Shown here: one piece after another, positions 25,001-50,521 of the stretch
Numbering within the stretch: position 1 is the first letter of the stretch
Layout: each line of letters starts with the position of its first letter
Assembly (NCBI RefSeq): GCF_037042905.1
Contig: NC_087248.1
Coordinates: 22,940,001 to 23,004,000, forward strand
Length of the DNA: 64,000 bases
Direction: 5' to 3'
Source of the DNA: Lytechinus pictus
Lineage: Eukaryota
Translations under genes and position numbers: made by a program
Notes under the pieces: generated by a model
Told to the model about the DNA's origin: nothing
The model's input: only the letters and a program-made list of their open reading frames with translations
Databases searched by the model: none

Positions 25001-28000
25001 TTTTATTGTTCCATATTCAAAACATAGAAATTTGCCCACCATTGTCAGTTCATACACAAGAATTATAAAGTATATAAATAAACACTAAAGACATGTTAAT
25101 TTGCTACACATTGAATATTTATATGTCTTCTGTATTTACTTATATTTTTATTGGATTTTGCTTTCATTCTCATTATTTTCAATGCACTCGTTTTATTTCA
25201 AATTTTTTTGCAAGAAAAATTCATGTTTTCCCTGGAAATCCATGTTCTTCTAGAATTATAGGATTTATCTTTATTTGATTCTCATGATTTTCATTGCATT
25301 TTTTGCATTTCAAATTGTGGAATTCCATATTCTTCCTGAATTTCACACGACTTATTTTGCTTTGATTCTCATTATTTTCACTGTAGTTTTCGAAATTCAT
25401 TGTTTTGCATGAAATATTGCTGTTTTCCCTGGAATTCTATATTTTTACCAAATTCTTGATACATGATTCTTACCTTCTTCTGTCACCTGTGGATACACCA
25501 ATGGTTGATCTGCTCCTTTAAAAAACTGAAGAAAAAGAAAATAAAAAATTTACACGTATCTAACATTCTATATTCATATTTCTTCCGCTCAGATTTGTGG
25601 TGAAATCAATACTTTTCATGTGCATAGTAGAATTCCAATGCTACAAACTAAATGTAAGGGATATAATAAAAATGATTTCTTTTGAAAACCAAATGTCACT
25701 CATTAGCACAAAATGCATTCCCTGGTTAAGCTAGTCTAGCGATTCTGGTGCTCATGGCTTTTAGAGGAATTACTTCCTGCCGCTACCCATTTACCTCACC
25801 TGGGTTGAGTTCAGCACATTGTGGATCAATATCTTGCTGAAAGACGTACACTCCATATCATTATTATCCCATTAGGCACAAAGCACTTACAATAAATTCA
25901 ATTAAAGTGTGTGCAATGATATGATCTTTTAAAACTTCAAACTACATAAGAAATGGGTTTTAATGTGCTTTCCATGATATACAAAGAATGAATGCTTATG
26001 GTGCAAATCGGTGAAAGATGAAATGAGTGATCATCTCATCTTCCACCTCATGAAGTATTTCTGTCCACTGCATTGAATGAAATGAACATTAATTATTTGC
26101 TTTATATGACACCTAAAAAATAGATCCTTGTCATTTGGCATTTATAACTTTGAATGCAAAAGTGCATTCAGTGTAAATTGTCGCATAGATACAACAAGTG
26201 GAATGCCTCTGGCCGTCTCACCTGCATCACGCGATTCAATATAGCAGCAGTGCTGATTTTGAAAACTACTATAACTCGCACAAGATGTTCAGTGATACTT
26301 GGTTACTCTTATTTCCACGTTTTATGAACTAGACCAATACACTTATAGAGATATGATGGCAATTCAACAAATACCCCCAACGTGGCCAAAGTTCTTTGAC
26401 CTTACATGACCTTTGACCTTGATCATGTGACCTGAAACTCGCACAGGATGTTCAGTGATACTTGATTACTATTATGTCCAAGTTTTATGAACTAGACCAA
26501 CACACATTCAAATTTATGGCTGTAATTCAACAAATACCCCAATTTGGCCAAAGTTCATTGACCCTAAATGACCTTTGACCTTGATCATGTGACCTGAAAC
26601 TTGCACAGGATGTTCAGTAATACTTGATTACTATTATGTCCAAGTTTCATGAATCAGATCCATAAACTTTCAAAGTTATGATGGTAATTCAACAGATACC
26701 CCCAATTCGGCCAAAGTTCATTGACCCTAAATGACCTTTGACCTTGGTCATGTGACGTGAAACTCATGCAGGATGTTCAGTGATACTTGATTAACCTTAT
26801 GTATAAGTTTCATGAACTAGGTCCATATATTTTCTAAGTTATGATGACATTTCAAAAACTTAACCTTAGGTTAAGATTTTGATGTTGATTCCCCCAACAT
26901 GGTCTAAGTTCATTGACCCTAAATGACCTTTGACCTTGGTCATGTGACATGAAACTCAGGCAGGATGTTCAGTAATACTTGATTAACCTTATGGCCAAGT
27001 TTCATGAACTAGGTCCATATACTTTCTAAGTTATGCTGTCATTTCAAAAACTTAACCTCAGGTTAAGATTTGGTGTTGACGCCGCCGTCGCCGCCGCCGC
27101 CGCCGCCGCCGTCGCCGTCGGAAAAGCGGCGCCTATAGTCTCACTCTGCTATGCAGGTGAGACAAAAACGCGCACTGTAAACATGAGTGTGTTCTTACGG
27201 GTACTACCCATGGTCTTGGCGTGCATGCAATGGACAAAATCGTATGGATCCAAAATTGCACAATGAATGGATCCAAAATTGCATGGTTGATGACGTCATT
27301 GTAAGATGGGCTGAATGATGGACGTCAAACAACCAATCAAATGGCAAGGATCTATCTAGGTGTCACATATATTAAGTTAATCTTCACAGCACCTGAAAGG
27401 CATAAAGAAGAACTTACCACCACAAGGTTTGACATGATGCTTACTACCTCATGCATTGAAGGCCTCATTTTAGCTTCGGAAGACCAACACCTGAAATAAC
27501 CAACAAATACAATATATAAGGCCCGTTTTTCAAACTTTGCTCATTCTCCTGAAGACGACAAGAACACACTTGTCGAAACGTCGAGTTTGGGTGGTCCTTT
27601 TTAGGACCAACATTTGCCCAAGAGAGATACATGGTGTCCCTTGAAACCTACTTCACTAACCAACAAATAGTCTATGATAATGCACTGTGATTGGTCAGAT
27701 TGGCATCATGTGACCTGCAATAGTTTCTTATACAAGATGAGAACCTATCCTAGAACTAACAATGATATGGTACCTCACTTGGTTAGGTAAGTACTTGGCA
27801 TGCAATAGTACACAAATAATACACATTTATGAGTGAGTTGTGGCGATGTCCATTAACATGTCCATTTATATTTATATGACTAGGGGGCCGTTTCATTAAG
27901 CTGTTCGTAAGTTAAGAGTGACTTTAAGAACGACTGGTGAACCTTTCTTCCGCGCTAAATCATCCCCAATGAATATACTGTTTACCACAAGAAAGGATCA

Positions 28001-31000
28001 CCAGTCGTTCTTAAAGTCGCTCTTAACTTACAAACAACTGTATGAAACACCCAGCAGGGGGCCATTTCATTAAGCTGTTCATAAATTAAGAGTGACTTTC
28101 ACAACGACTGGAGATCCTTTCTTGTGGTAAATGATATTTACCATTAAATGTTCATTGATTATTTAGTATGTGAGAAAGGTTCACCAGTCGTCTTAAAGTT
28201 GCTCGTAACTTACAAACAGCTTTATCATACACCCACCAGAAATAACCTTTGAGCTTGGCCCACTTAACTGGAACATGCTCAAAGTTAATTTCAATACTCA
28301 ATTGACCTGTGACACTGATTAAGTATGTGACCTCAAACTCATGACAAATGATCAGTGATACTTGATTACTCTTAAGTCCAAAATTAAAGAAATACAATCT
28401 AATAGGCCTACTTTCTAAGTTATGGTGACATTGATTTCCAAAAGTTTATCTTGGTTAAGATTTGGTGTCGACGATGCAGCCCCCGCCGTCGGAAAAAAAA
28501 AACGGCGCCTATGTCTCCCTTCTGTTATGCAGGTGAGACAAAATTAACCTTAGGTTAAAATTGCTGGCTGATGGATCCATGTTACATTTGTTTCCCCAAA
28601 TTAATTGTTGCCAGTTTCAGTTGTATACTTTAATTCATATGTTTCTTTTTATATTCTTATACTGACCTGGATGGAGGTAAAGGGGTGTGGGAAGGAAGAC
28701 CTGTGGGTCATGGTAATTTAGTTAACCTTTTCCAAACCCAGGCAGCCCCTTCATCTCTATTCCAGGTCCTTTGTATTATGTCACATATATATCCTATTAA
28801 TATGTAATTTGTATTGTACTATAATTCATGTATTTTGAAATTCCGAATAAATAATAATAATAAAATTTTGATGACACCATTGGTTGTGCCACTGCTGCAG
28901 CCACCATCGGGGAAGTGGCACCTACATGTATGCCTTTCTTTTGCTATGCAGCGAGACAAAAATCGTACTAATTGAAATCATATACTCACCTAGTCATTAA
29001 TTTTTCTAAAGGTTTTGGTATATTTCGTATTAACGGTGGTCTACGACCTGAAAAGGGAAAAGGAAACATTGATAAAATATCATTATATTTACTTATATTG
29101 AGGATATTACAGTAAACGCAAGTTGACTCATTTGCATCAGATATTGGACATTCATTCAAATTTGTATATTTGAAGATCTTGACCAAAGTTTGGACAGAGA
29201 AATAATAATAATCAAGGTAAATTCTCTAAAATATTTTGCAAAATTACCATGCATAAAACTTCTACACCCTGATCATATTTCACAATTATGTTTATTGTTT
29301 TTAACAGACGTGCATCAATCACATATGATTATTCTCTCTGGGGGCCAAACTTCAACACCACCTTCCAAATGACACGACTCAGGATTTGTGTCATCACGGC
29401 GAGTTACGTTGTCTTGCCAAGTCGACTAATAAAAAGTTGTATGTAAAACGGTGAGATATATGGTCAATGTAAGACTTCCGTACTTTAATACGGCCTACAT
29501 GATACAGAATGATGGCCCTCCTGGATCATTAAATGGTTTAGGTAAAACGGTTTATGTAAATGGCAAGATATGTGGTCGACGTAAAGCTTCCGTACTTACC
29601 ATTATGTACGGCCCACATTATACGGAACGCCGGCCCTCCTATATCATCGAATGGTTTACGTCTCGATATAACCTCCCATAAGATCACGCCCCAGCTGAAG
29701 ATATCACACTTCTCACTGTAAGCGCTTCCTGCAAAAAAAAAAAAATCGAAATATACTATCAGGATCATGTATATCTTAGTAAAATTTTTGTACATTTCAC
29801 AATCCTTGTGCACAAGTTGTGCCCTTATTATGGCGTAACTCCTTCACATTATTCCTGATGTGGAGAGCGTTTCATCTTGATTTTCGCTGAATAATTTGTT
29901 TCCAGCCGATCACCTGTGAGAATTTCAGTAGCTTATAACGGCAAATTGCTTCCTGGTTGACTACAGTGTACTGATCAACCTGCATCGATCACTGTGTTCT
30001 TCTTCGATTCCAAGTGATTACAACCCAACGTAAGCAGTACAATTTTCCTACGATTTCACTGCTAGTCCTTATTAATCCCCATTCATCCCTGTGTTTTGAG
30101 ATTAATAGCTCAGTTTAATATTTCTTTTATTTATAATTCTCAATCCAACTGGCGTAAATCTTTGCGTCACACCCAGTGTTCCATCCCTTCCACTTGAATA
30201 GCATGACGTCACAGATTTACGCCCGTGCTCAATCCTAATGTGTTATGGGGACCAGGATAATACATGTCATTATGGTGTTGGAGTCAGTAAATGGAAGGAA
30301 TTAGGTATATTTCAAAAATTGTTAATATTCATGAGGGGGGGGGGGGGGGTTCACAAAGAATTGAGTGTGAGTTAGAGTCATGCTTAAATTCTGTTGCGCA
30401 CAGTAAGTAACATGGAATTTGATTCATTAATCTGCAGGAGCGTGCGTCCCCTTCGCATGATATGACCAATGCCATGGTGCCGTTTATACCGCTGAAATCA
30501 CATCTATTGGCACAGTCACATTTCGCCTCAGATAGCCGTACAACGAGTAAAAAACAGTCAATTTTATCATTCTTGTACCAGCTTCCCGTATGTGGTTCGT
30601 ATAGAAATCTGTATGGACACCGTAGGGGAAATGTGACTGCAGCATAATCTTTGTGAAACACCCCCCATGGTCCACAAGCAGCTGGTCCAATTCTCAGATA
30701 GTCTAATACCACATGGGCTAAACTCATTTGTTCCACTATCAGTTTGGTCTAATTGCCATTTGGTCTAAATTTCCACTTAGTCTAAATACTTAATATTCTA
30801 TATTTATTTCCAAGTAGAAATCTGACAGAAATTAACAGCCCATCTGACCATATTGACTGAATGGTGTGAGACCAAGTTGATATTAGATGAAACAGACAGA
30901 TATAGCTTGACGTGAATCGGACCAAATGATGAATGGGCTAAACAGCAATCAGACAAGTTTTACCATCAGCCTATCGGATATAAGGATTTCAGTAGCTTTT

Positions 31001-34000
31001 AACTGTTATTGCAAATTTGTTATCACAACAAGTTTTATGAAACGGGCCCCAGGTGTAGACCAATCAGCAATTCACTGCAAATATTGACCATAATACTTGC
31101 TCCAGCAGACAAACTCCAACACTGGCCTTCTCCATGAACTACAGTACAAAAAATATGGTACATAATATTTTTTACAAGGTCAAAACTGTTGTCAGCATGA
31201 TTTCAACTTCATTTCAATTTGATTTCATTTATCTCATTTGAAATGAATATGAGATGCTGTTGAAACCATGCTGAAAACATGCTTCAGTTTTGCCTATAAC
31301 TATAAACAAAGAGAAATATTTGCCCTTTGAACTTTGACCTGACCTTCAAAAACTTCAGGTGCCATCCATGCTGCGCTGCCTTTGTTATTCGTCATGTAGG
31401 TATGGAAATCGCATGCTGTTCCAAAATCACAGATCTTCAGCACCGTCCCGCCAGACATCAACAGCAAACTAGATAGAGAGGATATAAAGAATTAATGGTA
31501 ATGATTAACGTTGATTTGAATTTAAAACATATTAGCTGTAAGGTCTAAACTGTTACCTGTTTCTGTGATAAGCCCTGAAAAAAACTGAATCTGAAAAATA
31601 ATCATTATTTATCAGACTATCATCAGACCATGGTGTAAATTAAACCAGAGTTTAGAATATGGGCCAAAGTGTCTAGTTGACGACTGGTTGAACAACTCAA
31701 GGGACATGGTGGCTCGGTGGTAGAGCGCCCACCTCATGAACAGGAGGTCGTGAGTTCGATCCCTGGCCTACATTTAGTCTTGCCAAAGACTTTAAAAATG
31801 GGACCTTATGCCTTCTTGTCAGGCGCTCGACGTATGAGAATGGAGAAGGGTAATAATAACAATAATTATGCAGGGCCAGCTGGAAGAACAGCTTACAACT
31901 GAGAGTGGCTACCCTGGGTAAATTATTATCATTATTATTATTATTGACACTTTACTTACTTTGCTGGTTTTAAATCCCTGTGTATTAACTTCTTTGGCGT
32001 CATACAGTGAAGGTAGTCGACCCCCTTGGCACACTGCAAGGCCCAGCTCATGGCGTGGGCAGCCTTGTAGATGGGCTGCGGCTGGCTGCTGTGAAGGACA
32101 TTGTACAGCGACCCGCCCTCGGCATACTCCATCACCAGGCAGACGGGGCGGGTGGTGCACGCCCCGTAGAGCTTGACGATGTTTGGATGGTCCACTCGGG
32201 AAAGCTGCCTGACCTGAAATTTAGATTTTTTTTCAGTGAGATGTGCATCATCATTATTGCCATTATTCGGCATCAACATTATAAATATTGTCTTCTTCAT
32301 CCTAAAATCGTATGTTCTCAACTTTTTTTTTTGCATCAGCAGCAGCATTATCATCATCATCAACATCACCGTTATCATCACCACCATCACAACCATCATC
32401 ATCATCCTTATCACCATCATCAGCATCATCATCATCATCATAACCATTAGTCAATTACCATTTTCATCATCATCATTACCATCATCATCACCATCATCAT
32501 CACCATTATCATCATCATCACCACCACCATCATAAAAAACAGTGGCATATTGAGCCAAATATTTTAAGGTGGCAGAAAATTTGTTTAATAAGTTGCAAGT
32601 GAGGAACAAAAAAAATTACAGCATTTTTAATACGAGTAGCTAATTTTGTTAGACTTTGACAATATATTTCACCTATTTCCTGTCCTTTTTTCCCTAGTTT
32701 ATATCTTGGTCATGGAACTGTTTTGGGGGCCTTCAAAAAGTAAAAAGATATACGACTTACCTCGACTCTGAAGGCTTTGATCTCCTCTTCTGATTCGATC
32801 ATCTTGACAGCCACATTCATAGATCGCCATTTTGCTTTACTTACTACTCCAAACGCTCCTTTGCCTACGACCTACATGTACAAAACAAAGTCCAATTATA
32901 TATAATGAATGCTCGACCTAACAAATTTCATTTAGAGACAGTGATATGGAAATGAGAAAGACAATGATGTTCCCACTCACTATTTCTTTTGTATTTTTTA
33001 TTGTCTGAATTATTCCATATTTCATTTTTTACAGGTTCGACAATAAGTACCAACTTCACTGACCCATAAAACCTTAAAACAATGGTAAATTCACATGTTC
33101 AAGGATGAATAAAACTTTCTTTCACAGGACAATGGGGAGAAAATTAGAATAGGGGTCTAGAAAAATATACCATATTTCATTATAATAAAATACAAAAGAA
33201 ATAGCGAGTGGATGATGACATCAGTCTCCTCATTTGCATACCGTCCAGGATGTGCCTATAATAAACTGTTTTGTGAAATTAAAGTGATCATTTCACTTTG
33301 TTCCGATTTGAAAAATTATCCTTTTGGTTCCTGAAAATGGGCTAGACATGAGGCTTATAGTGTAAAAATACTAACCCAAAAGTTTCAAAGTATTATATTT
33401 ACAGGATCAATTTTAAAACCTTGGAGATGTAAACCAAAGTTTGAAATAATTGGGAGTTGGTTTCAATGACTATGTGTATACAGGGAATCTGTGCACAACA
33501 CATTAATTCTAGATGAACACAGCATGACCTACATACAGTGTGTACAAGGTATACACTGAATGTACAGTGCAGCTAATAGTGTGTGTATAGGAGATACACA
33601 CAACAGAAGGCAGTCAAAATAGCCAACGGACTTTTTGAATTGGAGAAAACTGGTCATAAGCTGAACCCGTCTACTAGACGGTTCTCAAAATCAGGCTAAT
33701 AAATTGCTACTTGTATCTAAATTAGAGTTTTTCATCCTATATTGTGGTCTGTTTCAGGGTTTTTGAGGACAAATAATGGCACTCATACGCACGTTTCAAC
33801 TCAGTTTGAGAATTTTTTAAATCAGCTGCTCACAAAGTTAAACGATCCCTTTAAGCGAAACTTTAAAATGTCATAACTTTCTTATTTTACATCCAATTTT
33901 GATGAAATTCTCAGTGTTATGTCTTATGCTTGCACTTGTTCATTATTTAAGTTGTATGTTTGAATTTTCTCTTTTAATTTTATCAAAATAATCTGTTGGG

Positions 34001-35650: not shown

Positions 35651-35806
35651 NNNNNNNNNNNNNNNNNNNNNNNNNNNNNNNNNNNNNNNNNNNNNNNNNN
35701 NNNNNNNNNNNNNNNNNNNNNNNNNNNNNNNNNNNNNNNNNNNNNNNNNNNNNNNNNNNNNNNNNNNNNNNNNNNNNNNNNNNNNNNNNNNNNNNNNNNN
35801 NNNNNN
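35651..35806. other. Assembly gap
   Basis: Run of N. Confidence 1.
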
Positions 35807-36800
35807 NCCGGTTATGTACGTGATTTTTTTTTTTTTTTTCATTTTTCATACACTTTCCCAAAAGGGGTATGATTGTTTAAAATTTCAATGGTGTATAGGC
35901 ATAAATAAAGAGTTTGACCCGAGTCGTATTATTGAAACTTATCAATTTGCAACACTGAATAAAATTTATATCTCGATGTCGAGTTATTTATTGCATAAAC
36001 AAGCTGTTCTTTCGAAAGCATTCCTTTTTGTGTGTAATTTCTGTATTATATTTTTAGACGATCTAGGGGATCTTCAAACTTCCACCTACCCAAAATATCA
36101 CCTCTTTAGCAAAGAATTGTATGTTTTACAAAGGACCAATATTATCTGGAACAAAATACCACTTTATGTTAAATCTATCATTAAATGTTTTTAAAAGGAG
36201 ATCAAAACCCAACTTCTCAGTAAATATTCTAATAATGTTTGACCAAATTTTCTTTTCTCTTTCGCCTTTCGTTTTTTGGAGTAATTATCTTTGTGTCATT
36301 GTGTTAAAATGTGTATTTCCCCCTTTTATGCTCAATCTGGTATTCAGTATTCATGACATCATGATTATACTCCACAATATCATATATTCAGTTTCCAGTT
36401 TTTGTGAAGGTGGCAGCACCAATAATTGCATTTGTAATTGCCTCCGCACTCATTCATAAATTATGAATAGGGCCTACTTTTTTTTCAATTGTTTTCCAGA
36501 TTTTATAATTGCATTATCATCACGATTATACGATTTTTCCATGTAAAGTATGTTAAAGGTCAAGTCCACCCCAGAAAAATGTTGATTTGAAATAATAGAG
36601 AAAAATCAAACAAGCATAATATTGAAAATTTCATCAAAATTGGATGAAAAATAAGAAAGTTATGACATTTTAAATTTTCGTTTATTTTCCACAAAACAGT
36701 TAACAGGACAACAATATGATTGCATAAAATGCCATAAAAACAAATTGCATCATGCATGGTCCGGTCCGGTGTGACCTACTTTCACCATTATTATGCAGGT

Positions 36801-39818: not shown

Positions 39819-40504
39819 GTATTTGTGGTATGATTACAGAAATTGGAAAAACGAACTCTTTTGTTACTATCTACATAATTCCCGGCCGAATTTCGACAGG
39901 CATGCATGTTCAAATGTTAATTTATTGGTAACCGAAACATGGTTCTCTGATACACTCTTCACACATGCCCCCATCACCCCTTTTATCATATAGCCCCAGC
40001 ATCCAGTACGTAGCCTTTTGGACATGATATGTTTTTATTTTGGATTTTTATGAAAGGATAGGTCTATATAGTTAATAGGTCCATGTTATTAGAATCTTTT
40101 CTCAGCTCAGAGAGCCTATTATAATCAAAATACATCTCTATCAGACCCTGTCTTTTCTCAAAAATTTTGTTTTGAATAAAAATGGTGCCACTACGTCTAC
40201 AGGCCTCCCAATTTTTTTTAAATTTCCGTTCCCCATGCATTTATTTGAAAATTAAAGATGATCTAGCCATAATTGTAACAATTAGGCCAGTTATATTCAT
40301 TTAGAGCAGCATCTTTACCCCAGCTCTAACAAAAAACATATTATAACTCCTGTGGGAAGTCTAAAACGATACAGTAACAAAAGGCGTGCCATATCTATTC
40401 ACAGCCCGGTGCAATGTAAACAAACGCGAACAAAGTGAGCCACGAATTTGCGCCTTTTAAATGGCAATTATATTTGCGGCCTGAAGTACACAGTCAACTC
40501 CAAC

Positions 40505-40929
40505 ATGGCGGCCAGTGGCATGGCAAGGATGAGGTATTTTGAGAACAAAATGCCGGACTGTGGCTACGATCAGGAGGTCCAAATTCCAGTCGACCAGATC
40601 CGTGCTCGAATCGTAGCGGTAATCGAAGCTCTTCGGCAGAACGTGGTGCCGAACCAACAGGCCTGCGAGGGTGGCGTGTATGTTGGGATCGCTGGAATCG
40701 CCTATGCGCTGCTGTACGTGGCTCAATCAAAACAGATCCCAGAGAAAGAGAGTGAATATTTAGAACTCGCTGAGCAGTATATAGCTCAAGCATTGGACTA
40801 TGAAGAGAAAAAACGATCGCCAGAAACTCGATCAGCATTTCTTCTCGGATCAGCAGGAGTTTATGCAGTGGCATCTCTCTTGTACAGAGCGCTGGGAAAA
40901 GAAGAAAAGGTGCAAGAATATATCGGGAA
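40505..40929 (+). CDS. LANCL3: LANCL3 exon 1
   Basis: aacATGG start; MAASGMARMRYFEN...EYIG; gtaagt donor. Confidence 0.92.
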
Positions 40930-43900
40930 GTAAGTATGAATGATTGAGAGGGGGGGGGGGGGCTTAATTTCACCTAAAGCTACACACTTTGGTTTACAAG
41001 CTATAACAATTCTCACAATTTTTATATGTGAACAGATTAACTTACAAGGAGTAAGCAGGGGGGGGGGGCAGCCCCCCACTTTTTTCCAAAACCATTTACA
41101 AAAACGTAAAAATGACCATATGATTGTGATTTTTTGCATTGGTCAGCCCCCCCACTTTGAAAACCGTTCCGCAGCCCCTGGTAAGGGTCATTAACCAAGC
41201 AAAAAAAACTGAAAAAATCACAAAACTAGTAGTAGATCTACATATAAAAAATCCTGAGCTGTGACCTGTGTTTTCCTAACACCTCTTGATATGCTGCCAG
41301 AATTGGAAGGGTCCTAGAAAAGAAATGGTATTTCTTCTTTTCTTGTTTCTTGACTTCTTAAATGTTAACCCAGAAGGTAACCATAGCCTTATAATTATAT
41401 TATAGGCTGCCAAAGGTAACAAATACTAACATAGGCACCTTCGAGGTTGGGGTACCAAAAACGCCCATAATTAAAGAAAAAAAAAGAAATCATGCACCCA
41501 CCTCAATTCTAATGGCTGAAGGTCTAAGTACCGACAGCAGAATCCTGACATCGAGGAGTAGCCAGACCCTCAAAAAGGGGGAAAAGGGCCACGTTCGTTC
41601 ACTCACTTTCAAAATTGAAAACAAAAATTGGCCGATCATGTATGGGATGGCGCATATGTATGCAAAGAAAACAAATTTTCAAGCAATTTAAATAGGCCTA
41701 CATGTAGACTCAGTCAAATTCGCGCATGCGCCCTCGGTATATCGATTGGCCAGTTCCGTATTATATAGCCTACAGTACATGTACATGTATTTGGCACTTT
41801 ATTGATACACGTACTGCCTTGACCGAACTGTGCAAAGTCTGTGTTTAGAGATAGGCCAGGCCGTAAACACTACTTCTTGGGGGTGCATAAATTGCCCTAA
41901 TTAGGTTTATTATGACATGACTTACAATACCATTACCAGTCACAATTCTTTGACTCGCTATTACCTGTTAAAACCAGAGAACAATGGATTCGGTCCACTG
42001 AATCTGTTGTTCTCTGGGGTTTTTTAACAGATAATAGTGATTCAAAGGATTGTGACTGGTAGTGTAACAAAATAAATCGCTGTAACTTGTTTATAAAATT
42101 GGCTGATGTCCCATAAGGATAACGGAGCAGCTTCTCTTTATGTTAACATATATTTGTAAAGATTATCTCTGACCAAAAAGTGACAATAATTTTCTCTGAC
42201 TCTGTGCTCCTTCCCTCGATCTACATGTACTCTCGAGGTCACGTTCTGGTGTCTGAGCGATGCGTTGATTAGGCCTACTGGCTGCGCCCATTTTGTGTGT
42301 ACATGTTTATTGCATAGAGATGCAGGGTTGGGCTCAATTAATTTCTTCAATTACAATTCCGTAATCGAAGAAATGTTCAATTACAATTACAATTCCGTAA
42401 TCGAAGAAATGTTCAATTACAATTACTTTTCAATTGAATTACATTTTTTTGCAATTACAATTACCAATTACTTTTGTCAATTAGAATTACAATTTCGATT
42501 ACTGTCTATAAAGTCATAATTGATATCAATTTAAGTTTTGTATGTAGTGTCACCCATTTCAACATATATTTCTAAGTTTGAGAAAAACTGACAAAATGAA
42601 GGTTTATTACATGTAGTTTAGACTTTAGAGAGCATTGATCCTGCCTATCTCTCCCTTTAATGCTATAAAAGTCAATTGACATTCTCAATTATATGAAGAT
42701 CTGCATGCTTTAGTTTCTTCATTTGTAGAAATCATGATACTGTACAAGCTGTTATTTTCGTGTACAGAAAAATCGGGGGTCCCCGCGGTTGTTAAATTGG
42801 AAAATGTACGAAATACTTCCACAGCATTTCAAAGAAGCAAAACTACTGCAAATTATGTGCAATACTATGCTCCTCATAGTTCCTCTGCTGATGTGTCTTT
42901 TGTACATAAATATGTCCCTGTAAAACCATTTACAAAATGTGGAAAAAGTAGCTTAAATTTCACTTTTTTGTACTTTTAGATCTGAAAATTCATCATGTCA
43001 CAGTTTGATCTGTAAGAGTAATCTTATGAAGTGGTGTTTTGTTAGATTCACTTTTTAAAAAGATGGTTTCAGTGCAAAAATGTTCAATTTTGTGAACACA
43101 ATCTTACACCTCCAAAAGCTCCGGTCATGTGACTTATGAATATTAATGAGTATGCAAATAGCTGCTAATACGTGTGTATATAGTGAATCAGATGACAATG
43201 AAATCAAATTATTTTATGGAAAATACATATTATTACAGTGAGTGAATAAATATCGATAGAATTATGTGAGAAAATAGTTTAGGCTCTGATTTTGTTTGAG
43301 AAATAAAAAAAATCAAATTCTAGCTAACTTTTTGAATCACTAACTGTACTTTCTAAAACTTATTTTTTGTACATATAGAGGTGCATATCTCTTCTTTTAT
43401 TATAGAGGATGTCTTCAAGAGCTTTAATAGCTGTGCTGTTGGGGATATTGGCACCAGTTGACTAATAAAAGTGTCAATATTTTCGTGTGTTGTTAAATTC
43501 GCGGCCGATGGGCAATCTGCGAAAATAACAGCTCATACAGTATACAACATGTAAACTTGAATTGTAAGACGTGACCTCGTTCATCAATGGCAGATCCAGC
43601 TTTCAACTATAGGGAAGGGGGGGGGGGGCAGGAAAAAACATTTTCATCCACTAAAAGCCCACTTTTGAGACAAAGATGATTTAACATGAAAATTGACAGA
43701 GCTAAACATTAATAAATCAAGATGAATTTGAAACGTATGAAAAGCTTACACATTACATCCTTGTCTGGGAATGAGGATTTCCAAATCTAACGCAAAGCGT
43801 GCTGCTGCCAAATTGAACATTGGTATACTAAAAGACAATCGAGCACAGTGCGACCGATCAATGGATATTGAGCCCGGGGGGGGGGGGGGGGGGCCACTTC

Positions 43901-46900: not shown

Positions 46901-49900
46901 TTAGAGCACTTAAAAACTTTTGTTAAAGCAAGTGTTAAGTGCTATACAGGGGCCGCGGAACGGTTTTCCAAGTGGGGGGGCTGAGCCAAAAGTGGGGGGG
47001 CTGAAAATCATGCAGAAAATCACAATCGTATGGTCATTTTTGCATTTTTGTACACGGTTTTGGAAAAAAGTGGGGGGGGGCTGAAGCCCCCCCAGCCCCC
47101 CCCCCCCCCCCCCCCCCGGTTCCGCGGCCCCTGCTATATAAGCAAGTATTATTATATTCAGAGCCTGGGATGTGATTTAAAGCACTCGCAGTATGCAACC
47201 ACCTTGTGTTGTAACACAACATAACATCCAAAAATCTTTCAAATACATCGTAACCCGTAACCCCCCCCAAAAAAAAACCAACCCACCATCTAATCAAATG
47301 AATGATACATACATGTCTTTTCAGGTGAGGTGAATGGGCACCAGGGCCCTGTCTTACAAAGAGTTCCGATCAATCTTAACTATGGGCGGCCAGCAGCGTC
47401 ATCTATTATGCATGTTTGTTCAAAATATTTTCTAGCTATGATGTATATTTATGCATTCATTGTTTTCTTGAAAATTCACTGCACTTCTCTTTGCAAACAG
47501 AGGACATTGCGCAAGTTTTTCGTAGAAAAAAATTATGACACTGATGGATTTCCATAATTACGATTGATCGGATCAATCGTAACTCTTTGTAAGACGGGCC
47601 CTGGTAGGAGGTCACTTTCAAAATCTGTCAGTGTCAAGTCACATTGGATCAGTTGTGATGAATCTTATTTTTTTTTTTTTCTTTTGAGTTTTTAAGTGAG
47701 ATGGACTGCTTATGATCAATCTCATTTTCTTATATCGTTAGGTTAGCATAACGGTGACTTTGGCGTGAAGTGAACTCTTACTGCTTGTGATTAATCTTAT
47801 TTTATTGTGTTACCAGTACTTTTGGGGTTTTAATGAAATGGACTGTCTGTGATTAGTCTTGTTTTCTTGTTTAGGTTTTGAGTGATGAGGTGGCTTTCAC
47901 TTGTCTGTTGAGAGATAAAGAACTGCTTGTAATTAATCTTACTTTCTTGTGTCCTTAGGTTCTGAGTGATGAAGTGACTTTCATGATCTGTCGAGCCATA
48001 GTAGATTCTGGGCGGAGCTATTCACAAAGGCATAAATCACAATCACCGCTAATGTATGCATATTACCAGACAGAATATTTAGGTAGGTTTGTAAAATGGT
48101 GGTATAGTANNNNNNNNNNNNNNNNNNNNNNNNNNNNNNNNNNNNNNNNNNNNNNNNNNNNNNNNNNNNNNNNNNNNNNNNNNNNNNNNNNNNNNNNNNN
48201 NNNNNNNNNNNNNNNNNNNNNNNNNNNNNNNNNNNNNNNNNNNNNNNNNNNNNNNNNNNNNNNNNNNNNNNNNNNNNNNNNNNNNNNNNNNNNNNNNNNN
48301 NNNNNNNNNNNNNNNNNNNNNNNNNNNNNNNNNNNNNNNNNNNNNNNNNNNNNNNNNNNNNNNNNNNNNNNNNNNNNNNNNNNNNNNNNNNNNNNNNNNN
48401 AAGTTGAAGAGAAAGAAGGAGATAAAGAAGAAGGAGGAGGAGAGGGAAGAGGAGAAGAAGAGGTGGGGGAGGGAGGAGAAGAAGAGAAAAATAGAAAGAA
48501 GGAGAAGAAGAAGAAGAAAAGAAAGAAGGAGGAAGAGGAGAAGGGGGAGGGGAAGAAGGAGGAGGAAAAAAAGGAGGAGGTCATATTTTACCCAGGGTAG
48601 CCTCTTCACTTCTGTACATTTTATACAGGTATCTGAAAAAATCTCCAAATCCTCCCTGTATGAGAGTGAAAAACTGTGCCAATCATTAGAAAAATTGTTT
48701 AGATACAAAGTAGTACCCCTTTTCCCAGTACAGCACAATTACACTGCACATATTCATGTAGTTGTTATCTTTAAAATGCCCTTCAAGTTCAAGTTCAATT
48801 TATTCAAAAAACCAGACACATTATGAGTACAAATCAATGATCAGATGGTACAAAAGAATACATGTTACAATATAAACGGTTTTCTAGGACCCCTTGGCTA
48901 TGCCTTGGGCATTTTAGAATTGTTCTTAATGAATAATTCTTACTCTTGCGCTCATTGATGTGTATTATTTGTGTACTGATCCATGATGACACGTTGATTT
49001 GAATTAGGTGCTGCACACGGCCTTTCTGGAATCGTCCAGATGCTGCTCAACTATCCAACCTTTGTCAAGTCCGACCCGTCTATCGAGGCCGACGTCAAGA
49101 ACACAGTGGATTATCTAATCTCGTGTAGATCACCGGATTACAACATCCCGCCTACTGTAGCCGAGTGTATCCAGCAACGTCCTCCCGAGCATCAACTCGT
49201 CCATTGGTGTCATGGTGCACCAGGTAAATATCTGTTGTTATTTACTACCTGTATCAGACATCTTAGAGCGTTGTGGCCCAGTGGATTAGTCTCCGGACTT
49301 TGAAACAGAGGGTCGTTGGTTCAAATCCCAGCCATGGCGTAGTTTCCTTCAGCAAGAAATTATATCCACATTGTGCTGCACTCAACCCAGGTGAGGTTAG
49401 TGGGTACCTAGCAGGAATTATTCCTTGAAATGCCGAGCGCGTGAAAGCTGCTTGAGCTACAGCGGGGGTAATAATATCCAAGTCCTTTGGAAGCGCATAG
49501 ATACGTTATTCATAATGTGTTCTGCGCTGTACAAGAACTGACTCTTATTATTATTATCTTAGGTGGTCAATTTATTATAACCTAGAGTTATTGCCCGAGA
49601 TGTCATAAATATTTGTAATGAGTAAGGTATATTACGAGGCATTGTCGTAATAGTAGTTAGAAAAGAGATACTGTTTCTTTCTTATTCCCTCTTCTATTTT
49701 TCTCCGCCCCCTTTTTTATGGGAGGGGTGAAAATTTATTTTTCCTCTCCACCATTTTTTTTATGGGGACGGGGGGGGGGGGGGGGGGGGGGGCTACTCCC
49801 CCAGCCTCCCAGCTTCCGGTGCCCATGGTATAAGATAGCAATATTGTTGTTTGTTTCAGGTGTTATCTACCTGTTTGCCAAGGCTTTCCTGCTCTGGAAG

Positions 49901-50521
49901 GACCCCATGCACCTCATCGCGAGCAGAAAATGTGCCGACCTGTCGTAATAGTAGTTAGAAAAGAGATACTGTTTCTTTCTTATTCCCTCTTCTATTTTTC
50001 TCCGCCCCCTTTTTTATGGGAGGGGTGAAAATTTATTTTTCCTCTCCACCATTTTTTTTATGGGGACGGGGGGGGGGGGGGTTGGGGGGCTATTCCCCCA
50101 GCCTCCCAGCTTCCGGTGCCCATGGTATAAGATAGCAATATTGTTGTTTGTTTCAGGTGTTATCTACCTGTTTGCCAAGGCTTTCCTGCTCTGGAAGGAC
50201 CCCATGCACCTCATCGCGAGCAGAAAATGTGCCGACCTGACGTGGCAGAAAGGGCTCCTCAGGAAAGGCCCCGGTATCTGCCACGGCATCACCGGCAACG
50301 GCTACGTCTTCCTACTCACCTACCGCCTGACCGGGGATTGCAAGTTCATCCACAGAGCCCTGCAGTTCTCCGAGTTCATGCAGACGGAGGAGTTTGTGAA
50401 GGGGGCGAGGTGTCCGGACGCTCCGTTAAGTTTGTTCGAGGGCTGGGCTGGTGCAGTTTGCTTTCTCACTGATCTTCTTCAGCCGCATAATGCAGAGTTT
50501 CCCTTCTTTGATGTGTTCTAA
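40505..50521 (+). CDS. LANCL3: LanC-like protein 3; whole gene, 5 coding exons, ~419 aa
   Basis: Motifs RYFEN, GGVYVGIAG, SDEVLVGRAGYL, PLMYAYYQTEYLGAAHG, LVHWCHGAPG, KGPGICHG, SLFEG and AEFPFF. Exons sum to 1260 nt in frame. Confidence 0.92.
41932..42063. mobile_element. ~130-bp hairpin element
   Basis: Imperfect palindrome; same family as 63290-63417 in the opposite orientation. Confidence 0.7.
42322..42535. repeat. (CAATTA)n-rich element end with a 33-bp tandem duplication
   Basis: cagggttgggctcaatta start followed by repeated caattacaatt. Confidence 0.7.
42748..43542. mobile_element. TA-flanked non-autonomous DNA element
   Basis: tactgtacaagctgttattttcg / cgaaaataacagctcatacagta. Confidence 0.6.
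43873..44664. mobile_element. Second copy of the CCCGGG-ended element, 8-bp TSD atattgag
   Basis: High similarity to 7706-8356, with an extra internal subrepeat. Confidence 0.9.
46215..46344 (+). CDS. LANCL3: LANCL3 exon 2 (YAGLAGICCQPGDYLGCGSDEVLVGRAGYLCG...)
   Basis: gcag/gtcagt; phases 2/0. Confidence 0.93.
46672..46945 (+). mobile_element. tRNA-derived SINE (degenerate)
   Basis: A/B-box-like head; body homologous to 49265-49558. Confidence 0.7.
47959..48082 (+). CDS. LANCL3: LANCL3 exon 3 (VLSDEVTFMICRAIVDSG...YQTEYL)
   Basis: ttag/gtaggt; phases 0/1. Confidence 0.92.
48110..48400. other. Assembly gap, followed by a GAA/GGA purine repeat to ~48580
   Basis: Run of N in LANCL3 intron 3. 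Confidence 1.
49008..49223 (+). CDS. LANCL3: LANCL3 exon 4 (AAHGLSGIVQML...LVHWCHGAP)
   Basis: GAAHG and WCHG motifs; ttag/gtaaat. Confidence 0.94.
49265..49558 (+). mobile_element. tRNA-derived SINE, full length
   Basis: A box tggcccagtgg, B box ggttcaaatccc, central cagcaagaaatt...ctcaacccaggtg...tgggtacc and an (ATT)n tail. Fragments at ~25720-25850 and ~53060-53135 on the minus strand. Confidence 0.85.
49860..49948 (+). pseudogene. Truncated duplicate of the start of LANCL3 exon 5
   Basis: Part of a ~298-bp tandem duplication (49643-49940 / 49941-50238); reads VIYLFAK...CADLS then TAA. Confidence 0.75.
50157..50521 (+). CDS. LANCL3: LANCL3 terminal exon 5 (VIYLFAKA...GICHG...FPFFDVF*)
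   Basis: tttcag acceptor; CHG zinc motif; TAA stop. Confidence 0.94.

Follow-up and report, generated by a model that had tools for sequence, protein, structure and literature searches.

Minimal hammerhead ribozymes (min-HHRs) of truncated Penelope-like elements (PLEs) are found in thousands of copies in many animal genomes. They have CUGANGA and GAAA boxes, a nucleotide between A9 and G10.1 that stays unpaired, and a G10.1-C11.1 pair; they have no helix III of their own, and a palindrome at positions 15.2-16.2 lets two copies build one (PMC4209133). PLEs are frequently 5'-truncated and have target-site duplications (TSDs) of variable length, and their reverse transcription begins at an internal, AC-rich site that lies ~90 nt 3' of where the hammerhead cuts (PMC8557442, PMC11167929).

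The locus compared with these elements here is a 147-bp insert in the window, the whole 64-kb stretch of sea-urchin DNA that was analysed. By far the most probable explanation, with a probability of roughly 0.8, is that it is a retrotransposition product of a very abundant sea-urchin PLE family, either a severely 5'-truncated junction between the pLTR and the start of the ORF or a short non-autonomous derivative. The features of the insert and its surroundings are as follows, with the basis for each in brackets.

27497..27509, no strand: left TSD copy, TAACCAACAAATA (sequence, exact repeat)
27657..27669, no strand: right TSD copy (sequence, exact repeat)
27510..27656, plus: the 147-bp insert, a probable PLE-type end module and member of a high-copy family (read depth)
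27513..27521, plus: TATA-like box TATATAAGG, with TATATAA at 27513-27519 (sequence)
27542-27546, plus: CATTC cap-like motif, its A 30 nt downstream of the TATA-like box (sequence)
27539..27592, plus: predicted minimal type I hammerhead (descriptor search, folds, criteria of PMC4209133)
27546-27548 and 27583-27585, plus: inner part of stem I, CTC:GAG (sequence)
27549-27555, plus: core CUGAAGA (sequence)
27556, plus: bulged, unpaired C (sequence, descriptor)
27557-27574, plus: helix II, GACAAG/CUUGUC, 6 bp, with loop AACACA (sequence, fold)
27575-27578, plus: GAAA box (sequence)
27575-27582, plus: GAAAC-GTC (sequence)
27578-27581, plus: palindromic ACGU in place of helix III (sequence)
27582, plus: C17, with the predicted cut directly after it (sequence)
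27593..27608, plus: histone-type 3' stem-loop, GGUCCU-UUUU-AGGACC (weak Rfam Histone3 match, descriptor)
27619..27627, plus: purine-rich box CAAGAGAGA, 10 nt past the stem-loop (sequence, descriptor)
27631..27656, plus: sole ATG in the insert, in the context ACAUGG, opening MVSLETYF, then an AC-rich 3' end (sequence)
27418..27490, minus: TAK1 (MAP3K7) exon of 73 nt, encoding 24 residues (sequence, translation, RNA depth)
27496-27491, minus: TAK1 acceptor UUUCAG, with its AG at 27492-27491 (sequence)
27417-27412, minus: TAK1 donor GUAAGU (sequence)

The preliminary description of this region had proposed an insert bracketed by a 13-bp direct repeat, which is borne out by two exact copies. It had also taken the duplicated target to be the pyrimidine-rich tract of the TAK1 acceptor; on the TAK1 strand the left copy indeed lies within that tract, immediately before UUUCAG. 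The plus-strand motifs listed there (tatataa, CTGAAGA, a 6-bp hairpin, GAAAC-GTC, CTC:GAG, and a second hairpin) were all found again. By itself the repeat is weak evidence, because ~0.7 exact 13-nt repeats with a spacing of 30-500 nt are expected by chance in a shuffled 64-kb window. Its edges coincide with those of the high-copy segment in the read-depth data. A Pol III SINE is ruled out by the lack of A and B boxes, a MITE or DNA transposon by the lack of terminal inverted repeats and the 13-bp length of the duplication, and a histone orphon or retrocopy by the fact that no frame encodes a histone.

The insert is a high-copy repeat flanked by single-copy sequence. In public runs, the summed contig word depth is 27,000-247,000 within 27516-27643, compared to 20-90 in the exon and in 27676-27803, and the same pattern of high depth between low-depth flanks is found in two species. 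A copy of the family from another locus aligns across 27531-27658. Within the 64-kb window there is no second copy (BLASTN of the insert against the window), and exact scans of viral, metagenome, and prokaryote-genome collections with two different core patterns gave 0 matches. Raw RNA-read depth is ~90 at 27516-47, ~360 at 27548-611, and ~255 at 27612-43, with the 5' quarter of the insert 4 times below the core, a profile that fits 3'-anchored, 5'-truncated copies. The block kept between the families of both species, from ~27539-27550 to 27620, is exactly the hammerhead plus the stem-loop.

A search for the empty site in other individuals or species had been suggested, and gave results of both kinds. 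Two individuals of one related species carry the insert at the orthologous locus, with contigs spanning 27566-27903 in run X2 and 27345-27560 in run X4. In the more distant relative referred to as organism C, a contig of depth 64.1 aligns to 27409-27504, ending inside the duplication, and the same depth resumes from ~27662 to ~27725, as would be expected of a precise empty site. The insert is probably absent there, judging from the matching depths, with no joint among those listed.

The sequence of the insert agrees with every published sequence criterion for a PLE min-HHR. The predicted cleavage site has the U16.1-H17 form, with U at 27581 and C17 at 27582; C 27556 is unpaired and G 27557 pairs with C 27574; and there is neither a helix III nor a loop 3, the ACGU at 27578-81 being self-complementary. 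A descriptor built for this analysis on the criteria of PMC4209133 matched once in the window and not at all in 200 shuffles, with an analytic chance expectation of ~1e-5 per window. An Infernal check with the Rfam hammerhead models had been recommended, but no model scores the insert: cmscan reported no hammerhead family in segments of 601 nt and 101 nt at E<=10, or in the whole window at gathering scores. This blindness is expected because the motif has no helix III, and the insert is a clean illustration of how Rfam models miss the min-HHR class.

Two supposed defects of the hammerhead, put forward in the preliminary description as reasons to doubt its activity, do not hold up. PLE min-HHRs conserve the extra C following CUGAAGA as a hallmark (PMC4209133), and a base in this position is diagnostic of the class, not damaging. 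Stem I is not short either: in the folds it runs from GCUCA/UGGGU through a UU/UU internal loop to CUC/GAG. None of the read-table rows listed has a variant inside the hammerhead helices. There is no excess of read ends at 27582/27583 in the RNA run, which is weak negative evidence against cleavage in vivo.

The second hairpin, ggtcct-tttt-aggacc, is present as described, but it should be identified as a histone-type stem-loop, followed by a box resembling the histone downstream element. A descriptor for the canonical 16-nt form (GGYYYU-UYUN-ARRRCC) has its sole match in the window at 27593-27608. The Rfam Histone3 model aligns at all 17 positions, but its 14.9 bits fall short of the gathering score of 34. 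According to the reads, this copy departs from its family at two positions where the consensus has the canonical form, with a UUUC loop (27602 T>C) and the box CAAGAAAGA (27624 G>A) in place of CAAGAGAGA. We take CAAGAAAGA to be the classical sea-urchin spacer motif. The box includes AAAGA, complementary to the conserved UCUUU box of U7 snRNA (PMC5054213), and is a candidate downstream element. The joint chance of the stem-loop and CAAGARAGA is ~0.004 per 2 Gb. The flanks are not of the histone type, with UUUGGGU and not an A-rich sequence on the 5' side and AACA and not ACCCA/ACCA on the 3' side, and in the RNA run the depth is maintained past the stem-loop. A hammerhead followed by a signal resembling a histone mRNA end is the only unusual feature of the insert, and no description of a histone stem-loop with a CAAGAAAGA-type box in retrotransposons was found in the papers examined. 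If the signal is used, a retrotransposon would be tapping the histone pathway, which is coupled to the cell cycle and needs no poly(A), for the production or stabilisation of its RNA.

Toward the ends of the insert, functions can be suggested by analogy. The CATTC at 27542-27546 resembles sea-urchin histone cap sites. In view of this resemblance and of the PLE literature (PMC11167929), the TATA-like box is a possible pLTR promoter. If the anole PLE is a guide (PMC11167929), the ATG and AC-rich region may mark where the element ORF and reverse transcription begin.

Consequences for TAK1 appear slight. The gene is on the minus strand and the insert motifs are on the plus strand, confirming the antisense arrangement proposed earlier, and 19 bases separate the insert from the exon; with the acceptor AG at 27492-27491, the insert therefore starts at intron position -20. 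Its placement beside the acceptor was correctly described, except that the end adjoining the splice site is the TATA end and not the hairpin end. RNA depth is limited to the TAK1 exon and falls at 27490, as expected under normal acceptor use (9.4 in the exon; 2.5 in the bin that includes 7 bases of it, where 2.05 was predicted). The normal acceptor appears to be still in use despite the insert. The old branch-point region would have been displaced by 160 nt, and the reversed TATA end (CUUAU, with the branch A at -27) probably supplies a new one. In reverse complement, the hammerhead core also gives rise to a cryptic site, UCUUCAG|G, 58 nt upstream. The insertion as such is routine, and TAK1 splicing is seemingly undisturbed.

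The preliminary description had called the insert a mobile, Penelope- or retrozyme-like unit. Mobility and the likeness to PLEs are supported by the high copy number, the TSD, the probable empty site at the orthologous locus, and the min-HHR features. As in other PLE insertions, there is a TSD of variable length (13 bp here), a loss of depth toward the 5' end, and a 3' end a short way (74 nt) past the cut. No PLE ORF, reverse transcriptase, or GIY-YIG domain was found in the window by a Pfam search of the ten largest ORFs, which brought up nothing beyond the TAK1 kinase and a LANCL-like gene. For a PLE product, the endonuclease of the element would have opened the T-rich strand, TAK1-sense, with a nick at GGUUA^UUUCAG; reverse transcription, begun within the element RNA ~74 nt past the point of hammerhead cleavage, would have halted after 147 nt, and a staggered second nick would have left the 13-bp duplication. 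The insert is best read as a 5'-truncated copy, dead on arrival, whose source was a PLE end or else a short non-autonomous derivative. A min-HHR without helix III would be active only by pairing of its ACGU with that of a second copy, or with the help of a protein, and a lone antisense intronic fragment is most likely inert.

A different and unlikely possibility is that the family is a self-standing short non-autonomous retroelement made up of TATA box, cap site, hammerhead, stem-loop, and box, giving a non-polyadenylated Pol II transcript of ~67-70 nt that is copied back into DNA by PLE enzymes; read-through of this unit would account for the 147-bp copy. The 30-nt spacing between TATATAAGG and the cap-like motif, the low joint chance of stem-loop and box, and the canonical loop and CAAGAAAGA restored in the family consensus all favor it. 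The core at 27548-27611 has 2-9 times the depth of either flank, which also points this way, but contig depth does not equal copy number. The copy at this locus, however, reaches 34 nt 5' and 45 nt 3' beyond the proposed transcript, which therefore was not the template of the insert. Moreover, the stem-loop lacks the A-rich 5' context usual for histone mRNAs, and the ratio of RNA to DNA depth is steady past 27611, a pile-up of read ends not being reported. It is similarly doubtful that this urchin family has taken over the 3'-end machinery of histone mRNAs outright, its pLTR serving as a mini-gene (TATA box, cap site, hammerhead, stem-loop, U7-binding box) with an SLBP-bound, non-polyadenylated transcript of ~67-70 nt that is reverse-transcribed into the genome. 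If so, this would explain why the core of hammerhead and stem-loop far exceeds its flanks in abundance and differs less than they do between species.

Less probable still is a monomer of an animal non-LTR retrozyme, i.e., a unit of a tandem family forming circular RNA via hammerhead self-cleavage, and not a PLE fragment. The small size (147 bp), the hammerhead, and a duplication of >4 bp are all as in metazoan retrozymes (PMC7229834), and a preprint of 2026 traces animal retrozymes back to PLE pLTRs (10.64898/2026.07.22.740005). The insert nevertheless stands alone, BLASTN giving no tandem partner for it in the window, and no head-to-tail 147-bp joint is among those listed from the reads. Its hammerhead is of the minimal PLE type, not a canonical type I with loop-loop contacts (PMC7229834, PMC4209133), so that the retrozyme combination of tandem units and canonical type I hammerheads, with helix III and contacts between loops 1 and 2, is not seen. 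A self-standing retrozyme is no more likely than a PLE end truncated on its 5' side. Finally, a chance repeat with accidental hammerhead- and histone-like motifs in old intronic repeat DNA, with no discrete insertion, would suit the ~0.7 repeats expected per window and the lack of an Rfam hammerhead match, but is very improbable given that the repeat edges are those of the high-copy segment, that organism C probably has an empty site, that the hammerhead descriptor is so rarely matched by chance, and that the stem-loop and box are so rarely expected together.

Among known systems, the histone mRNA 3' signal (SLBP/U7 snRNP) shares with the insert a 6-bp stem with a GG base and U-A top, an A after the stem, a 4-nt UUUC loop (in the family consensus), and an AAAGA-bearing purine-rich box 10 nt downstream. 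The insert differs in having no histone coding sequence, A-rich 5' flank, or ACCCA/ACCA 3' flank. Metazoan non-LTR retrozymes are likewise small non-coding hammerhead units with TSDs of >4 bp, and they rely on the enzymes of retroelements, probably PLEs (Cervera & de la Pena 2020, PMC7229834). They are tandem and multi-copy, with canonical type I hammerheads and circular RNAs, whereas the urchin insert is single and has the minimal variant.

The anole Poseidon PLE PAc (Frangieh et al. 2024, PMC11167929) also has a hammerhead at the pLTR/ORF junction, target nicks at AT-rich sites, and 5'-truncated products. Its reverse transcription starts internally, so that insertions stop at a set, short interval 3' of the hammerhead, within AC-rich sequence (PMC11167929). 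This start is 85-92 nt past the cut, and the urchin copy ends 74 nt past it; the PAc ORF begins inside helix II, and the only ATG of the urchin insert is 49 nt past the cut. The PLE min-HHRs (Cervera & De la Pena 2014, PMC4209133) and the urchin motif have in common CUGANGA and GAAA boxes, a nucleotide left unpaired between A9 and G10.1, a G10.1-C11.1 pair, a long (6 bp) helix II, no helix III, and a palindromic 15.2-16.2 (ACGU), and in both cases the copies are mainly solo, dispersed, and very numerous. The urchin motif differs from them in its stem I, which is a fairly long interrupted helix (3 + 5 bp), and in having a histone-type stem-loop 10 nt past the cut, together with a CAAGAAAGA-type box.

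An exact 13-bp repeat, TAACCAACAAATA (27497-27509 and 27657-27669, from sequence reading and a repeat search), brackets a segment of 147 bp. Taken alone this is weak evidence of insertion, since exact repeats of at least 13 nt at 30-500 nt spacing occur about 0.7 times per shuffled window. Contigs from three DNA-type runs and raw reads from one RNA run were considered as aligned to 27100-28050. Summed word depth is 20-90 across the adjoining TAK1 exon and 27676-27803, against 27,000-247,000 across 27516-27643 in two individuals of organism B (X2, X4) and 16,000-285,000 across 27516-27611 in organism C (X7), a more distant relative. With exact repeat copies and high-copy depth between low-depth flanks, the segment is a genuine insertion of a high-copy repeat bracketed by a target-site duplication, as first proposed. 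An ordinary-depth 947-nt contig from a different locus aligns only over 27531-27658, so the right edge of the family lies no more than 2 nt from the insert end.

The insert is found at the TAK1 locus in both organism B individuals, on bridging contigs aligned to 27566-27903 (X2) and 27345-27560 (X4). Their flanks differ by about 8% from the window, which makes organism B either a close relative or a divergent haplotype. One organism C contig, of depth 64.1, covers 27409-27504 and ends eight bases inside the left repeat copy; coverage of exactly 64.1 returns at about 27662 and continues to about 27725. The preliminary description had called for an empty site to be sought; this pattern is as expected from a precise one, judging by matching depths and not by a joint, of which there is none among the rows listed. 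Raw RNA reads, which are free of assembly effects, have depths of about 90 at 27516-27547, 360 over the core (27548-27611), 255 at 27612-27643, and 190 (scaled) over the last 13 nt, a profile of the 3'-anchored, 5'-truncated type.

The minimal hammerhead within the insert, read from the sequence, has the following parts:

27539-27543, +, stem I, outer 5' strand GCUCA
27544-27545, +, stem I internal loop UU
27546-27548, +, stem I, inner 5' strand CUC
27549-27555, +, hammerhead core CUGAAGA
27556, +, unpaired base C
27557-27562, +, helix II, 5' strand GACAAG
27563-27568, +, loop 2 AACACA
27569-27574, +, helix II, 3' strand CUUGUC
27575-27578, +, hammerhead core GAAA
27579-27582, +, positions 15.2, 16.2, 16.1, and 17 (C-G-U-C)
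27583-27585, +, stem I, inner 3' strand GAG
27586-27587, +, stem I internal loop UU
27588-27592, +, stem I, outer 3' strand UGGGU

Stems I and II both appear in the minimum-free-energy fold. Minimal hammerheads of Penelope-like elements (PLEs) are without helix III or loop 3, have a palindromic 15.2-16.2 so that helix III is built jointly by two copies, and have a long helix II with a conserved G10.1-C11.1 pair and an unpaired nucleotide between A9 and G10.1 (Cervera and De la Pena, PMC4209133). By sequence comparison the motif has every one of these traits, so C 27556, which had been taken as a flaw casting doubt on activity, is instead a hallmark of the class. A descriptor built from the PMC4209133 constraints matched once on both strands of the 64-kb window, at 27546-27585, and in 0 of 200 dinucleotide shuffles (rough analytic expectation, ~1e-5 per window). 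The suggested Infernal search was negative: no Rfam hammerhead model matched a 101-nt slice, even at E ≤ 10. A motif lacking helix III would be expected to escape these models, and the original authors likewise required a structure descriptor to detect PLE minimal hammerheads (PMC4209133).

The second hairpin noted earlier is present at 27593-27608, and its likely identity is more specific. The only relevant Rfam match is the histone 3' stem-loop at 27593-27609, compatible at all 17 aligned positions and scoring 14.9 bits, below the gathering score of 34. Ten nt past it is a purine-rich box:

27619-27627, +, box CAAGAGAGA

According to the reads, the window copy differs from the family consensus at exactly two key positions, 27602 and 27624. 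At 27602, C accounts for 224,796 of 230,491 depth units in X2 (169,466 of 170,469 in organism C), giving a UUUC loop; at 27624, A accounts for 80,733 of 82,570 (X2), so that the family box is CAAGAAAGA, the classical sea-urchin histone spacer element. Its AAAGA is complementary to UCUUU, a box that U7 snRNA conserves universally in its histone-binding region (PMC5054213). A strict stem-loop descriptor has a single match in the window, and the joint chance of a stem-loop with CAAGARAGA 5-20 nt away is about 0.004 per 2 Gb. Depth and loose ends indicate at least 85% identity between the organism B and C families from ~27539-27550 to 27620, that is, over the hammerhead and stem-loop, with both flanks diverged, which suggests selection on the two as one block.

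Several observations count against a working histone signal: the stem-loop lacks an A-rich 5' flank, it is followed by AACA on its 3' side, and in the one RNA run the RNA/DNA depth ratio does not drop past the stem-loop and no read-end pile-up is reported, although a 70-nt RNA would be lost from a standard RNA-seq library. A full-text literature search for histone stem-loops in retrotransposons returned nothing relevant. In the family consensus the ribozyme is joined to a histone-type stem-loop and a downstream box, and this putative signal is what raises the insert above routine.

The host gene was identified from a kinase-domain ORF at 31956-32213 (E = 3.6e-40 against TAK1 structures) and from the exon adjoining the insert, whose best match is TAK1 residues 239-262. 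By direct reading:

27418-27490, -, TAK1/MAP3K7 coding exon, 73 nt
27417-27412, -, exon donor GUAAGU
27496-27491, -, exon acceptor UUUCAG

With the acceptor so placed, the left repeat copy spans -7 to -19 of the intron and the insert runs from -20, its + strand 5' (TATA) end being closest to the splice site. The element is antisense to TAK1 (motif on +, gene on -), so the ribozyme is absent from TAK1 pre-mRNA, as originally argued. The reconstructed empty intron has one consensus branch site, CUGAC (A at -45), which the insertion displaced to about -205; read in reverse complement, the TATA box now provides a candidate branch site, CUUAU (A at -27). On the minus strand, the hammerhead core and helix II (27549-27570) read UGUGUUCUUGUCGUCUUCAG|G, predicted to be a good cryptic 3' splice site, which would lie upstream of the genuine acceptor by 58 nt. 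Its use would frameshift TAK1, and such cryptic acceptors may be general in introns with antisense PLE hammerheads. RNA reads cover the exon at a depth of 9.4 and the bin with seven exon bases at 2.5, where 2.05 would be expected if coverage ends at 27490, so the normal acceptor appears to be in use in this run, whose animal may or may not carry the insert.

Other repeats lie nearby. Copies of one extremely abundant repeat (27100-27168 and 27883-28050), whose summed depth reaches the millions and RNA depth the thousands, flank the TAK1 exon on either side, with sharp loose ends at 27168 and 27882/27883 and some contigs linking 27168 straight to 27883. Numerous "opposite strand" joints near 27914/28012 and 27981/27989 suggest a fold-back or MITE-like family. 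A third family (27228-27387, depth ~100,000) stops some 30 nt short of the exon donor, this copy differing from consensus at 27305, 27323, and 27324. The same intron has a tandem or segmental block at 26284-27040 (spacings ~163, 192, and 355 bp; exact matches up to 43 nt). A LanC-like (LANCL) gene is encoded downstream of TAK1 on the other strand (+, 40448-40933 and 50060-50521, the latter ORF with a Pfam LANC_like match). A very recent duplication at 49643-50240 (298-bp spacing; 139- and 146-nt exact repeats), adjoining a masked N run, takes in the beginning of a LANCL-like exon and a TTTCAG that resembles a splice acceptor. The N runs of the window, at 35651-35807 and 48110-48400, stayed masked throughout.

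The initial reading of a mobile Penelope-like unit is supported, with these corrections, by the high-copy family, target-site duplication, and minimal hammerhead traits. The 64-kb window has neither a second copy nor an ORF for the PLE enzyme domains (RT/GIY-YIG), and exact-pattern scans of public viral, metagenome, and prokaryote-genome collections gave no match to the insert's core. Its sole ATG (27631, ACAUGG context) opens MVSLETYF, reading through to the insert end, and may start the element's ORF. The insert is best read as a solo, probably dead-on-arrival Penelope-type end with a minimal hammerhead, a class already well known. PLE insertions typically show strong 5' truncation, target-site duplications of variable length, and a hammerhead in the pLTR (PMC8557442). 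The anole PLE initiates at a nick in AT-rich DNA without target homology; protein is required for its hammerhead to cleave, and insertion in vitro can do without that ribozyme (PMC11167929). Here the first nick would have cut the TAK1-sense strand at GGTTA^TTTCAG. Reverse transcription of the anole element has an internal start, within AC-rich sequence 85-92 nt past the hammerhead cut (PMC11167929), whereas the urchin copy ends in AAACCUACUUCAC, 74 nt past the predicted cut at 27582.
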